Below, one piece after another: positions 39,138-62,908 of a stretch of 64,000 nucleotides of DNA. Origin of the DNA: Gekko japonicus (taxonomy: Eukaryota); the NCBI RefSeq assembly GCF_001447785.1, contig NW_015169220.1, forward strand, positions 124,001 through 188,000, read 5' to 3'. The translations under genes were made by a program, and so were the position numbers. How positions within the stretch are numbered: position 1 is the stretch's first letter; every line of letters starts with the position of its first letter. The notes beneath the pieces are model-generated. The model had not been told where the DNA came from, searched no databases, and saw nothing but the letters and a program-made list of their open reading frames with translations.

Positions 39138-39234
39138 ATGGATTTTTCCTCCGCTCGCTTGGCTATTTTGAAGGTGCTGGAGGGTGTGCGCGCGGAAGAG
39201 GTGCCCCGCCTATTGCATTGGATGAGAACGACCA
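39138..39234 (+). CDS. Methyltransferase exon 1
   Basis: aggATGG start; MDFSSARLAILKVLEGVRAEEVPRLLHWMRTT; donor gtaagc, phase 1. Confidence 0.85.
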
Positions 39235-60200: not shown

Positions 60201-62908
60201 GCTGAAACATGGCCTTGTTGAGTGATTTTAAAGCCATGAGAAATTCCTACGTGAGAAAGGTCTCCATGAGAACTGGGCCCAAGTTATGTAGAACTTTAAT
60301 ACTCTAAACAAGCACTCTGAACTAGACATAAAAACAAACTGTGCTGCTGTTCTAGAACAGACATAATATGTTCACATCAATCTATACCTATCAGAGAGGT
60401 AACAGTATTTCTTAACCGTTAAATCCTTCATTCTCCAAGAAGGTGGTCTGGAAAGTGCTAGGAAGTCACAGCCGACATATGGCAACCCTGTAGGGTTTTC
60501 AAGGCAAGGGACAAACAGAGGTGGTTTGCTATGGCTGGCCTCTGCGTGGCAGCCGTGGACTTTGGTGGTCTCCCATCCAAGTACTACCCATGGGTGATGC
60601 TGGTTAGCTTCCAAGATCTGATGAGATCAGGCTAGCGGACCATCTAGATGAGGGCATTTCATATACACTTTATTTTAAATGTTGTTTTAATGTCTTAAAT
60701 ATGATGACATTGAAATGTTTGATGTTTGCCACTGTGGGGGACCTTATATGGGTGGAAAGTTGGCATAGAAATATTTTAAGATAAATAAATTTTGTGCAGA
60801 TTGTGATTACCTGTAGTGTCCTGACAGTTGCTGTGAAGGTTAGCTTTCTAAAACTCCTCTTCTAGTTATTGTTCTGGAAAATAGTGGGGGGGGGGGACAT
60901 ACAAGTTGTTCGTTCCGTGACCTTAAGGAATAACTAAAATGAGGCTAAATTGAGCTAAAGTAAGCTTACCAGAAAGCAGAAGGACAGGTAGTTATTTTGA
61001 TACTTCTCAATGGAATGGTATAGTAAACAATTACATCTGGAACAATCTAAAAATCTTAATCTAATGATAGTAAAACTAATATATTTGCAACCAGCAGTAA
61101 ACCAGGCCTTAGGATCTTTAACAACTATAAAACAGTCTGAGGATAATCCAAGGGTGAAGGGTAAATAGTCAGTATTTACTATTTTTAGGATTAATAAAGT
61201 ATTTGCATCTGCAGCTTGTACTCTTCAAAAAGAAAAGTCTTCTGCCATTTAAGGAGGGGGTAGGTTGCATTTGGAACTGCGGTGGCTCAAGTGGTTAAGA
61301 CACTGAACTGCAGGCTGTGGAAGGTCGGTAGTTCAGCAGTTCGAGACCCGAGTGTGCTGCATGACGGAGTGAGCTCCTGTCTCTAGTTCCAGCTCCTGCC
61401 AACCTAGCAGTTCGAAAGCAAGAAATTGCAAGTAGATAAATAGGTACCACTTCGGTGGGAAGGTAACAGCGTTCCATGCGCCTTGGTGTTTAGTCATGCC
61501 GGCCACATGACCACGGAAACATCTTCGGACAGCGCTGGCTCTTTGGCTTTGAAACGGAGACGAGCACCGCAACCCTAGAGTTGGATTCGACTGGCTTTCG
61601 AGCAAGGGAACCTTTACCTTTAGGTTGCATTTGCTTATTGCAAACCTGAATTTGGGTATTCCAGTTTTCTCCTTTCTTGCTTTCTCCTCTGAGCTGGCAT
61701 TTTTACAACTCTTGCATTTTTACCTGTTGGGACATGTGGAACATATTTCATTTACAGATACCTCTGACTACAACCAGCTTATTTAGTGATGATGATAACT
61801 TTGGCAGAGTTAGTAAAAACATTTCTTCCAGGTGTGCCGAAGGAGTAATAGCTACACTGCAGTCCTCTGACCTACTAGAATCCGTGGTCTTGGAGTAACT
61901 TTGCATAGGATCACAATTACTCCACACTAGGAGATATAAGATCCATGGAATAACACTCCAAATAATTGCATAAAATAACTAAGTAAGATGCAAAAAACAA
62001 AGGCTTTGTTCTCTTTAGTCAACAATATTGAAATGGATATCTCTGTCAGATCAGGCAACCCTGTGAAGGGGCCCATATGATAGTGATCCTTAAAAGCAAG
62101 AGGTGTTATTCAGTTATAATTAGTAGCTGTGATTACATATGAGGGATGGGGAATTTATACAGTTTCTAGCAAATGGTATCTACATAAAATGACCAGTGAC
62201 ACTAGTCCTAATTTGCTTTGTAGACTCTTGCCACATTGTTAAAGCAGTTCTTTGGCAATGGAAAGTTGGGGGGAAAGCTAAGTAGTGGTAGAAGAAAAAA
62301 TATTTTTAAGAAGTCTGGCAAAAACAATTCACCCAGTTGCATAATTTTGTAAAAAAGAGAAATCAATATCAGGAAGGCCTATCATTCAGTTGGAGGGCAC
62401 ATATTTTTGCAAGCGGAAAATCCCACATCCCTCTGGCATCTCCATTCTAAGGTGGTCAGCTGACAGACTGAGTGGGTGCAGGGACCCGATTTCTTGGTGA
62501 GCTATTTGGTTGAGCTAGATGGGCCAGTACTCAGATCTTGCAGCTTTGCGTGGTTGTGTGTGCAGTTCCATGGCTGAGTGCCACCATGGATGCAGTTGCA
62601 AATCCTCACCAAGATGTTCAAGCAGCCTTGCATATTTTGCTGACTTTTGCCTTTAACAGTTCCATCATGCAACTTACTATTAGATTTGATTTCCTTTGTA
62701 ACATACCTTCTTCATTACTGCACAGTGCTGTATATTCACAGGAGCAGATTCACTTACGGAAGGTTTAATTTCATATTGTAATTTTTTTCAGGTGGACATT
62801 CAGCTCAGCCAGTGGGTGGAAGCAATGCCATTACTCTATGATGTATTCTTGGAGGAAGATGCTGATAGAGAAGCACTTAAACAAATTTACTTGTATAAGA
62901 TTCTATAA
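39138..62908 (+). CDS. Uncharacterised class I SAM-dependent methyltransferase, 8 exons, 301 aa (probable orthologue of mouse 2700097O09Rik)
   Basis: Exons of 97,122,139,122,111,107,91,117 nt join in frame through GT-AG introns to 906 nt without internal stops; motif I VVVDVGSRLG, post-I IYGVE, motif II VLNADI, ADAVVMNNVF; orthology is from recalled synteny only. Confidence 0.9.
39680..40820 (-). mobile_element. Decayed CR1 fragments (3' tail and endonuclease region)
   Basis: gaacataag tail at ~39680; IMGDFNY on the - strand at ~39950-39970. Confidence 0.55.
40125..40356 (+). mobile_element. Internal L1 endonuclease fragment with an 18-bp TSD
   Basis: YTFYSGRHRSWSRID...ADHNP...WKLN; flanked by TAGATGCCTCAACAGAAT at 40107-40124 and 40357-40374. 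Confidence 0.85.
41402..41750 (-). mobile_element. Sauria SINE (Squam1), full length
   Basis: (ACCTTT)n tail, tRNA-like head, 13-bp TSD TAAAAGTGGGGTA. Confidence 0.92.
42881..44984. mobile_element. Composite region bounded by two outward-facing Helitron-like 3' ends
   Basis: Hairpin-N6-CTGA|T on - at ~42881-42910; hairpin-N6-CTTG|T on + at 44956-44985; CT/GA-rich tracts; internal palindromes. Confidence 0.45.
43664..43926 (+). mobile_element. tRNA-derived SINE (Squam3-like)
   Basis: gagagccagcttggtgtagtggttagg head; same body as 18155-18430. Confidence 0.8.
47281..47402 (+). CDS. Methyltransferase exon 2
   Basis: ttttatag acceptor; NDFDEFRSTNDDVLLRSIAEDLRHFLPTDGMLASEHFAIQK; donor gtaagt. 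Confidence 0.9.
47872..48460 (-). mobile_element. CR1 reverse transcriptase fragment
   Basis: DIVYLDFQKAFDKVPH, SGVP.G.VLG.VLFNLFINDL, KFVDDTKL, MRFN.GKCKVMH. Confidence 0.9.
48737..49833 (-). mobile_element. Possible solo LTR
   Basis: TG...CA ends; on the - strand a TATA-like GATAAAAAG (~49190-49199) then AGTAAA (~48891-48896); no TSD found. Confidence 0.35.
50379..50517 (+). CDS. Methyltransferase exon 3 (CxxC)
   Basis: LYQQTKPTVHIDAFLYDDEIIDSLCEEGKMSRNYCLTCGSHQTAPL; AG/GT boundaries. Confidence 0.9.
51398..52557 (+). mobile_element. 5'-truncated L2-type LINE, same family as 29300-32365; spans an N gap
   Basis: [41 protein letters not shown], (TAAA)n tail. Confidence 0.9.
51931..52191. 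other. Assembly gap
   Basis: Run of N. Confidence 1.
52600..53160 (+). mobile_element. CpG-rich putative solo LTR (Gypsy-like)
   Basis: Starts TGTAGT, GC boxes, TATTAA ~52823, AATAAA ~53080 and ~53098, ends ...GGGGGCA; TSD not clean. Confidence 0.5.
53396..53431. other. Assembly gap
   Basis: Run of N just upstream of the exon 4 acceptor. Confidence 1.
53442..53563 (+). CDS. Methyltransferase exon 4 (SAM-binding motif I)
   Basis: EFISHSFSLMELKFLYYHVLPDLTGKVVVDVGSRLGAVLFG; acceptor lies just after an N gap. Confidence 0.9.
55253..55363 (+). CDS. Methyltransferase exon 5
   Basis: GYFYSSASQIYGVEMNADFCHMQEVIVTKYQLDERIK; absent from the ORF track. Confidence 0.9.
56112..56218 (+). CDS. Methyltransferase exon 6
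   Basis: VLNADIRTQASLLQNADAVVMNNVFEYFLDKEEQA. Confidence 0.9.
57370..57518 (+). mobile_element. 5S rRNA-derived SINE; tail interrupted by a hAT element
   Basis: CCTGGTTAGTACTTGGATGGGAG as in vertebrate 5S rRNA. Confidence 0.8.
57519..58148. mobile_element. GC-rich non-autonomous hAT element
   Basis: TIR CAGGCCCGTAGC / GCTACAGGCCTG; TSD AGTCACTT / AGTCTCTT (7 of 8). Confidence 0.82.
58669..58759 (+). CDS. Methyltransferase exon 7
   Basis: SWEFISQNVKKKGSLLVTVPSLEESLSNLQ; donor gtgagt. Confidence 0.88.
58960..59320 (-). mobile_element. Decayed Penelope-like element 3' end
   Basis: - strand CTGTTGAagtga...tccatGAAAGTTTA hammerhead-like remnant plus the typical tail; upstream resembles a degenerate GIY-YIG C-terminus. 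Confidence 0.5.
59734..59925 (+). mobile_element. 5S rRNA-derived SINE
   Basis: gccctgacctgga head, 5S-like body, shared tail. Confidence 0.78.
60452..60656 (-). mobile_element. 5S rRNA-derived SINE
   Basis: ggtctcccatccaagtacta and ttagcttccaagatctgatgagatc = reverse complement of 5S internal sequence. Confidence 0.78.
61274..61620 (+). mobile_element. Sauria SINE (Squam1), full length
   Basis: 13-bp TSD TAGGTTGCATTTG (61261-61273, 61621-61633); ACCTTTACCTT tail. Confidence 0.92.
62792..62908 (+). CDS. Methyltransferase exon 8 (last coding exon)
   Basis: tttttttcag acceptor; VDIQLSQWVEAMPLLYDVFLEEDADREALKQIYLYKIL then TAA. Confidence 0.85.
   Translation: MDIQLSQWVEAMPLLYDVFLEEDADREALKQIYLYKIL

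Follow-up and report, generated by a model that had tools for sequence, protein, structure and literature searches.

LOC107114809 of Gekko japonicus may encode a DOT1-fold SAM-dependent protein methyltransferase of an uncharacterised family

The window analysed here, 64,000 nucleotides of Gekko japonicus contig NW_015169220.1, contains a real, expressed gene, LOC107114809, on the + strand. Its product is known to RefSeq as isoform X1 of an "uncharacterized protein" (P0186 in our protein set). The protein is very probably a functional class I SAM-dependent methyltransferase, and the DOT1 clade is probably its closest known kin. Our preferred reading, which we hold at about even odds, is that the enzyme is a DOT1-fold SAM-dependent protein methyltransferase, the substrate in this reading being a proposal. 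The gene is not new as a discovery, since RefSeq already carries it as an uncharacterised protein. The initial annotation of the window had regarded it as undescribed, which holds for its function, unassigned in RefSeq, but not for its annotation.

Gene structure and expression

The gene spans 39138-62908, where eight GT-AG exons of 97+122+139+122+111+107+91+117 nt join into 906 nt, that is 301 codons and a TAA; the coding sequence is free of Ns and of internal stops. Every internal exon boundary has a pyrimidine tract and AG before it and a GT after it. The coding part of exon 1 (39138-39234; residues 1-32 and 1 nt) starts with the ATG at 39138, 9 nt downstream of an in-frame TAG, encodes the N-terminal helix, and ends at the donor gtaagc, with 32 of 32 residues identical to P0186. 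Exon 2 (47281-47402; residues 33-73, in the helical region) lies between the acceptor ttgttttatag and the donor gtaagt and matches P0186 at 40/40 residues. Exon 3 (50379-50517; residues 74-119), placed by its splice signals and an RNA overhang, carries H83, D85 and the C108-x-x-C111 knuckle, while exon 4 (53442-53563; residues 120-160), preceded by the acceptor ttttccacag and again identical to P0186 (40/40 residues), carries H124-S125 and the SAM motif I, D-V-G-S-R-L-G. Exon 5 (55253-55363; residues 161-197) holds G172-V-E174, with the predicted ribose-binding acidic residue, and exon 6 (56112-56218; residues 198-233) holds D202 and the stretch A-D-x-V-V-M-N-N-V-F-E-Y-F; both exons are supported by RNA joints and by their match to P0186. 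Exon 7 (58669-58759; residues 233-263), with W235 and P253, is attached by an RNA joint at 56218|58669, and the coding part of exon 8 (62792-62908; residues 264-301, TAA at 62906-62908), with W271 and Y298, by an RNA overhang. The sequence further suggests a probable 3′ UTR at 62909-63345, with an AATAAA at 63322-63327, and a probable promoter at 38900-39137 shared with SRP54, a head-to-head neighbour on the - strand whose start-codon exon is at about 33864.

RNA-seq chains exons 3-4-5-6-7-8 exactly as in the model, with an intron depth of about 0. The GT..AG joints 53563|55253, 55363|56112 and 56218|58669 are crossed by 94 reads (run X21), 95 reads and 36 reads (run X21, and also contig X1), respectively. 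The last 30 nt of exon 3 appear as an overhang at the exon 3-4 join in 31 reads of run X21 and in one contig (X1), and the first letters of exon 8 appear as an overhang at the exon 7-8 join in 27 reads. The RNA support covers exons 3-8, and joins 1-2 and 2-3 are based on the splice signals and the exact match to P0186. The eight-exon, 301-residue model of the initial annotation, with its open frame, is thereby confirmed, the spliced transcripts that had been set in advance as a check are present in the reads, and the eight motifs it had named all lie on the + strand where it had put them. Four of five transcribed polymorphisms are synonymous. Rfam gave no matches in 38000-64000.

Identity, distribution and prior knowledge

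The window protein equals P0186 at 298 of 298 whole codons and also at the 3 split codons, which were read by hand. Judged by protein comparison, mouse 2700097O09Rik and fish zgc:109986 are orthologues of the gecko gene; the mouse gene had already been named in the initial annotation, and the assignment agrees with the source names of the rodent matches. Most tetrapod orthologues are exactly 301 residues long. Our family searches were seeded by exon 3, which as a phmmer query returned 237 clusters at E<=1e-3, and then by database members, and the fold was modelled on the database protein identical to the window protein. The family was also found in molluscs, annelids, echinoderms, tunicates, arthropods, a choanoflagellate, early-diverging fungi and a diplonemid. 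The earlier description of a conserved vertebrate family was thus right about conservation but too narrow in its vertebrate limit, as the family reaches fungi, the choanoflagellate and the diplonemid. The nearest relatives are all uncharacterised, so that the preset check for a characterised enzyme as closest match turned up none. Our literature searches on 2700097O09Rik, zgc 109986 and an SRP54 unitary pseudogene yielded gene lists or nothing, and no functional study. Mice with a homozygous knockout of 2700097O09Rik are viable (PMC4739719).

Conserved residues and a candidate metal site

Among 46 family members, sixteen residues are invariant (E67, D85, C108, C111, H124, S125, G151, S152, R153, G155, G172, E174, F225, W235, P253 and Y298), and all 16 are intact in the gecko protein. 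About 6-7 of these positions fall in residues 1-140, where H83 is also conserved in at least 90% of members. D85, C108, C111 and H124 form a candidate metal site; in the AlphaFold model its C-x-x-C lies in a turn linking the predicted strands 106-108 and 116-118. In the SAM motif I the invariant R153 stands at the middle Gly of D-x-G-x-G-x-G. From fungi to mammals, the residues predicted to contact SAM (D149, G151, G155, E174, D202) and those predicted on the acceptor side (N220, F222, F225, Y298) vary little or not at all. In DOT1L the catalytic Asn, N241, belongs to a V-N-N-F stretch, and a late Tyr, Y312, lines the lysine channel. The gecko family possesses a (N/H)219-N220-V-F222 stretch and the invariant Y298, which may be the counterparts of these DOT1L residues. 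All 46 members are acidic, with a pI of 4.3-5.2 and a net charge of -11 to -31, the gecko protein standing at about -19.

Predicted fold and relation to DOT1

The AlphaFold model of the gecko protein (pLDDT 91.0, pTM 0.81) has alternating strands and helices, and the class I methyltransferase fold, another of the preset checks, is predicted with high confidence. A fungal member, 39% identical, was modelled as well; the pLDDT values of the two models are 90-91, and because the models share one alignment they are not independent. When the gecko model was compared with 48,161 representative chains, the top match was 9ne1 (LpDot1; Z 16.4, rmsd 3.0 over 181 residues), the next family scored 14.0, and more than 400 solved methyltransferase chains reached Z>=8. 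In a second comparison, with the best 1000 of Foldseek, ranks 1-23 were all DOT1L or LpDot1 (Z 15.0-16.6), followed by aKMT (14.7) and yeast Dot1 (14.0), and the first enzyme of an unrelated kind came at 13.7. The fungal model placed LpDot1 (Z 16.1), yeast Dot1p and human DOT1L at ranks 1-3. Unrelated methyltransferases begin at Z 13.4-13.7. The margin of DOT1 over tRNA, rRNA and O-methyltransferases is modest, at 1-3 units, and the Foldseek E-values are tied across many families. As a lead only, the nearest named clusters outside the family by language-model features are DOT1, at 0.88-0.89.

The profile searches gave a more general answer. Methyltransf_12 of Pfam matched 44 of the 46 members, and the generic models Methyltransf_11/12/25/31 matched 39-44 of them over residues of about 147-250, some above cut-off; these generic class I domains carry no substrate information, and residues 1-140 of the gecko family lie outside the matches. 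The Pfam DOT1 model (PF08123; gathering score 23 bits) had no match in P0186 at E<=0.1. It weakly matched 13/46 members, and only P0127 passed, at 26.5 bits, with Methyltransf_31 scoring higher there (36.9 bits). Membership in Pfam DOT1 was consequently rejected, the gecko protein having no match and the cut-off being passed in one of 46 members. The proposal of the initial annotation that the protein is DOT1-like by its motifs survives in the fold searches, which agree for two models, but fails as sequence membership in DOT1. Searched against PDB sequences, the family profile returned TrmM-like, PRMT and COMT entries, with DOT1L not among them. Single exons 1-7 matched nothing in Pfam beyond a weak Methyltransf_12 in exon 6 (E 0.076), and exon 4 searched against the PDB with phmmer gave chance matches to cytochrome oxidase only.

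DOT1L and yeast Dot1p (KMT4, H3K79) likewise have a class I Rossmann core after a helical N-terminal region, and residues 40-301 of our model superpose on DOT1L 104-318 with Z up to 16.6 and an rmsd of about 3 A over 180-195 residues. The order of motifs is as in DOT1L: D-x-G-S-x-x-G, G-V-E 23 residues on, an acidic residue after strand 3, N-N-(V)-F after strand 4, and then a late aromatic, Y298 in the gecko protein. In contrast, the identity is only 13-15%, the gecko family has an Arg in place of the middle Gly in motif I and an extra D/C/C/H knuckle, and the gecko protein is acidic and stops at 301 right after the last strand, without a basic C-terminal DNA-binding tail. The nucleosome- and ubiquitin-binding elements and the basic tail expected of DOT1 were thus not found in it, and LpDot1 does not have them either.

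LpDot1 (9NE1), the top match of each model among the 48,161 representative chains (Z 16.4 for the gecko and 16.1 for the fungal protein; about 181/203 residues), is a Legionella pneumophila lysine methyltransferase of non-histone nuclear proteins, and its compact DOT1 core has neither the histone-binding loop nor the C-terminal helix found in DOT1L (bioRxiv 10.64898/2026.01.11.698932). This bacterial effector differs from the gecko protein by its canonical D-x-G-x-G-x-G and by having no Cys/His knuckle, and the identity is 12-15%. The next structural family after DOT1L and LpDot1 is the broad-specificity aKMT/aKMT4 of Sulfolobus (5FA8; Z 14.7), a minimal DOT1-type core of only about 160 residues without the N-terminal helical or knuckle module. 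aKMT4 carries the KMT4/Dot1 core and acts on basic chromatin and ribosomal proteins (PMC4639711).

Substrate class and alternative explanations

Because every member of the family is strongly acidic, the substrate would most likely be a basic protein, methylated on lysine. Protein as the substrate is what we infer, and we rate a protein lysine as the acceptor at slightly under an even chance. A less probable reading, although one to be taken seriously, is an active class I methyltransferase that acts on RNA (tRNA or rRNA) or on a small molecule or metabolite, in which case the metal of the Asp/Cys/Cys/His site might hold the substrate. TrmI, RsmG, TrmR, TrmN, METTL5 and cation-dependent O-methyltransferases all come within 1-3 Z units, P0186 has its best Pfam match in TRM5/TYW2 (23.6 bits), a model that 28/46 members match, the search of PDB sequences with the family profile returned COMT and TrmM-like entries, and the Foldseek matches include SgvM, a Zn-dependent C-methyltransferase. 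COMT also has a bulky residue in the middle of motif I. However, these Pfam matches are below or near cut-off and cover the generic Rossmann core only, the DOT1 clade comes first in three fold searches of two models, and the strong acidity of 46 of 46 members is unusual for enzymes that grip RNA alone.

The invariant R153 raises the concern that the protein is a methyltransferase-fold pseudoenzyme, a SAM/SAH sensor or scaffold without methyl transfer, since Gly-to-Arg changes in motif I serve to inactivate DOT1L and LpDot1 (bioRxiv 10.64898/2026.01.11.698932). The viability of the mouse without the gene and the apparent haplorhine loss would also fit such a role. We nevertheless consider it improbable, because the other SAM-contact and acceptor-side residues show little or no change between fungi and mammals, a pattern typical of a selected active site. 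We regard a CheR-like protein glutamate O-methyltransferase as very improbable. The Pfam CheR model (PF01739) matches 33/46 members around N-N-V-F-E-Y-F, the best of them at 27.4 bits against a cut-off of 27, yet the match spans only about 60 residues after strand 4, P0186 itself reaches 21.5 bits over just 63 residues, no CheR structure is in the top 50 of any of the three fold searches, and the N-terminal domain and beta-subdomain are not evident. The CheR-like classification was rejected on the grounds that P0186 falls under the cut-off and has no CheR fold match in the top 50.

Proposed mechanism and significance

If the gecko protein is a DOT1-fold protein methyltransferase, SAM would be seated on motif I through D149, G151 and G155, with its ribose bound by E174 and its adenine by D202. 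The acceptor channel would be lined by N219-N220-V-F222, F225, W271 and Y298. The N-terminal helical region and the small beta-hairpin knuckle may cap the active site and select the substrate, and the knuckle residues D85, C108, C111 and H124 probably hold a zinc.

To our knowledge, DOT1 is usually regarded as the sole non-SET histone lysine methyltransferase of eukaryotes. We tentatively suggest that there is a second ancient lineage of DOT1-type lysine methyltransferases, in animals, choanoflagellates and early fungi, marked by a zinc knuckle and by an Arg within the SAM motif. Such an enzyme could methylate a histone, a ribosomal protein or another basic protein, leaving a mark of its own, and its gene could have been lost in the common ancestor of monkeys, apes and humans and hence have escaped study. 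If this is true, a sister-like conserved family with an N-terminal metal module would widen the DOT1 class and would imply an additional methylation mark. As the knockout mouse is viable, the substrate question is directly testable by comparing methyl-proteomes or RNA modifications.

Absence from haplorhine primates

Haplorhine primates have apparently lost the gene. The best 120 matches of a lemur query, in which strepsirrhines and other mammals scored 85-96%, contained no protein from tarsiers, monkeys, apes or humans. The initial annotation had proposed a loss in the human lineage, and the absence of a human protein from these 120 matches agrees with it, but the loss looks older, as no haplorhine protein appears there. 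At the human position the annotated gene is the non-coding SRP54-AS1, and if a comparison of the DNA confirms the loss this would be a clean case of an enzyme gene that has decayed into a lncRNA. Since the family seems to occur neither in humans nor in the usual lists for yeast, fly and worm, human-centred catalogues of methyltransferases would overlook it.

Assembly gaps in intron 3

Intron 3 contains two assembly gaps, an N run at 51931-52191 and a second at 53396-53431, which stops 10 nt before exon 4. P0186 continues from residue 119 to 120 straight across the exon 3-4 junction, and because both the RNA and P0186 join exon 3 directly to exon 4, the gaps conceal no coding sequence. A LINE reverse-transcriptase-like ORF starts 240 nt before the first gap and enters it.

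Gene identity and structure

The gene on the forward strand at 39138-62908, which the initial annotation described as an orphan, is Gekko japonicus LOC107114809, so it is not a new gene; it was already annotated in RefSeq as an unnamed protein, and the earlier description stands in that no function is attached to it. The translation was compared exon by exon with P0186, isoform X1 of LOC107114809, and all 298 whole codons were identical; the three codons divided by introns give N33, E120 and R233 on manual reading, as in P0186. A tblastn search of the window with family proteins gave eight segments, one per exon. 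The coding part of exon 1 (39138-39234), exon 2 (47281-47402) and exon 3 (50379-50517) were placed by reading their flanks, and exon 4 (53442-53563), exon 5 (55253-55363), exon 6 (56112-56218), exon 7 (58669-58759) and the coding part of exon 8 (62792-62908) are also supported by RNA. All internal exon boundaries carry a pyrimidine tract and AG before the exon and GT after it. The exons sum to 906 nt, that is, 301 codons plus TAA; the coding sequence contains neither an internal stop nor any N, and an in-frame TAG lies 9 nt upstream of the ATG. The eight-exon, 301-residue model proposed earlier is thus confirmed by splice signals and open frame, and from exon 3 to exon 8 by RNA joints as well, and every motif quoted for it was found on the forward strand where it had been placed. 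It was also correct that the gene is mostly invisible among open reading frames; the ORF list holds only fragments of it because the exons are only 91-139 nt long.

Three raw RNA-seq runs labelled as the same species and one contig set were mapped to 53432-58800. Depth was limited to exons 4-7 and was about zero in the introns. In one raw run, X21, 94 reads cross the joint 53563|55253; 95 reads cross 55363|56112 and 36 cross 56218|58669, all three joints being GT..AG, and 27 reads run on from exon 7 into the first letters of exon 8. The joints in this interval match the predicted junctions exactly. Five transcribed polymorphisms were found, four of them synonymous third-position changes and the fifth R204C (C>T at 56130, about one third of the reads in X21); position 204 is variable, and is Cys in most other vertebrates.

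Intron 3 contains two runs of N, gap 1 (51931-52191) and gap 2 (53396-53431); the latter stops 10 nt short of exon 4, which leaves the acceptor ttttccacag readable in between. In RNA reads starting in exon 4, the unaligned overhang consists of the final 30 letters of exon 3 (31 reads in X21 and one contig in X1, the source with RNA contigs), and the orthologous protein is continuous from residue 119 to 120. Since both join exon 3 to exon 4, the gaps conceal no coding sequence. Fragments resembling LINE reverse transcriptase, with a Y-A-D-D motif and an F-Q-K-A-F-D-K-V-P-H-like stretch, lie at 48047-48426 (-) and 51369-51930 (+), in introns 2 and 3. An ORF at 51687-52274 adjoins the latter downstream and enters gap 1, and this LINE-like ORF may be the reason for the assembly break there.

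An ancient family with a predicted DOT1-type fold

A search with only the 46 aa of exon 3 against 1.84 billion representative proteins matched 237 clusters at E<=1e-3; many of these proteins are about 300 aa long. Family proteins are named in their sources "uncharacterized protein LOC...", in fish "zgc:109986" and in rodents "RIKEN cDNA 2700097O09 gene". The protein had been described as a conserved vertebrate one, but the family is far older, with members in mussels, a crinoid, annelids, a tunicate, a mayfly and a sea spider, and outside animals in a choanoflagellate, a diplonemid and early-diverging fungi (Mucoromycota, Glomeromycota and a chytrid). Most tetrapod orthologues have exactly 301 aa. 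Compared with the gecko protein, amniote members are 67-87% identical, those of fishes and a caecilian 55-63%, and those from outside vertebrates 30-44%. E67, D85, C108, C111, H124, S125, G151, S152, R153, G155, G172, E174, F225, W235, P253 and Y298 are invariant in 46 sequences; H83, D149, D202, D214, N220, V221, F222, W271 and others are at least 90% conserved, and the window protein keeps all of these residues. All 46 members are acidic (pI 4.3-5.2, net charge -11 to -31). Annotation slips occur among the database orthologues (P0002, P0264, P0192 and P0320): in an old Anolis UniProt model the exon with motif I is missing, a 301-aa Sigmodon orthologue is mislabelled BAZ1A, the king cobra orthologue is labelled 'prmC, partial', and an elephant-shark UniRef entry is labelled 'Arsenite methyltransferase'.

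The 46 members match generic Pfam models (Methyltransf_12 in 44, Methyltransf_25 in 42, Methyltransf_11 in 39) as well as CheR (33), TRM5/TYW2 (28) and DOT1 (13), the last above cut-off in one member only, where a generic model outscores it. Against PDB sequences the family profile matched the Rossmann core of TrmM-like enzymes, PRMTs and COMT (best E 1.5e-5), and DOT1L was absent from these matches. Judged by sequence, the protein is predicted to belong to the class I methyltransferases, and to none of the families described among them.

A model of P0186, whose sequence is that of the window protein, was built on the 46-sequence alignment (pLDDT 91.0, pTM 0.81) and shows helices at 1-75, a small sheet at 81-125 with C108-x-x-C111 in a hairpin turn, and a Rossmann core at 128-301. 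Foldseek ranked DOT1L first, with E-values tied with many methyltransferases. When 48,161 representative chains were aligned, the top one was 9ne1 (Z 16.4, rmsd 3.0, 181 residues; next family 14.0), with yeast Dot1p and human DOT1L in the top ten. 9NE1 is LpDot1, a Legionella pneumophila DOT1-fold enzyme that methylates non-histone proteins (bioRxiv 10.64898/2026.01.11.698932). After re-alignment of Foldseek's best 1000 chains, ranks 1-23 were DOT1L or 9ne1 only (Z 15.0-16.6), followed by the Sulfolobus lysine methyltransferase aKMT (14.7), yeast Dot1 (14.0) and the first unrelated enzymes (13.7); aKMT4 has been described with a KMT4/Dot1 core (PMC4639711). The model of a fungal member 39% identical to the gecko protein (pLDDT 90.2) ranked LpDot1 (16.1), yeast Dot1p (14.0) and DOT1L (13.6) first to third, a replicate only partly independent because both models were built on one common alignment. 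Language-model features place DOT1 clusters nearest outside the family's own (0.88-0.89), which we treat only as a lead. The models thus show a predicted shape closest to DOT1-type lysine methyltransferases; the DOT1-likeness proposed earlier holds for the nearest folds, but not for Pfam DOT1 membership by sequence. This expressed, conserved protein has a class I methyltransferase fold with the usual SAM-contact positions kept, and is an anciently conserved, uncharacterised variant of the DOT1-type fold.

Possible activity and the invariant R153

SAM would bind on D149/G151/G155, E174 and D202, and the acceptor would enter through a channel whose walls are formed by N219-N220-V-F222, F225, W271 and Y298. 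Covering the active site and determining substrate choice would be the role of the N-terminal helices together with the D85/C108/C111/H124 knuckle, a probable zinc site. An acidic surface points to a basic protein as the substrate, with lysine as the methylated residue.

What weighs most against reading the protein as an active methyltransferase is R153, an Arg present in every one of the 46 members at a position where DOT1 enzymes require glycine. COMT tolerates Tyr at the matching position, so R153 alone does not exclude SAM binding. A pseudoenzyme, with the methyltransferase fold but no methyl transfer, would nevertheless account for an invariant Arg at this motif I glycine, where Gly-to-Arg changes inactivate both DOT1L and LpDot1 (bioRxiv 10.64898/2026.01.11.698932). 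We consider this improbable.

Apparent absence in haplorhine primates

A mouse-lemur query found other strepsirrhines at 89-96% and many non-primate mammals at 85-90%. The best 120 matches included no tarsier, monkey, ape or human protein, in line with the apparent human loss noted in the initial annotation; because the search is limited to proteins of 166-527 aa, it would not detect short remnants. The human position adjoining SRP54 holds the annotated non-coding gene SRP54-AS1, which we infer to be what is left of the methyltransferase gene. RNA-seq has been done on mice homozygous for a 2700097O09Rik knockout (PMC4739719), which are therefore viable. The gene is a good experimental target.

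Neighbourhood and repeats

SRP54 coding exons, read on the reverse strand (start-codon exon at about 33864, exon with the T-K-L-D-G GTPase motif at 22412), place SRP54 head-to-head with the methyltransferase gene. In the short interval separating SRP54 from the methyltransferase ATG, GCATGCGCA-like palindromes at 39020-39032 and 39108-39116 resemble NRF1-type sites, which are typical of bidirectional housekeeping promoters.

In intron 1, 42800-45000 is low-complexity and Ser/Pro/Leu-rich; both strands contain long ORFs, of up to 239 aa, and GC skew and AT skew swing strongly. It looks like a simple or satellite-like repeat and not coding sequence. The segment GGTTAGTACTTGGATGGGAGACC, which resembles the 3' half of 5S rRNA, occurs in three copies with 1-2 mismatches, at 57391-57413 (+), 60567-60589 (-) and 26985-27007 (-), where none would be expected by chance. 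They probably represent the heads of a 5S-derived SINE; Rfam at gathering score gave no match in 38000-64000. Many RNA reads that stem from other copies pile up on the one near 57.4 kb, reaching a depth of up to 521 in X1 and showing loose ends at either side.
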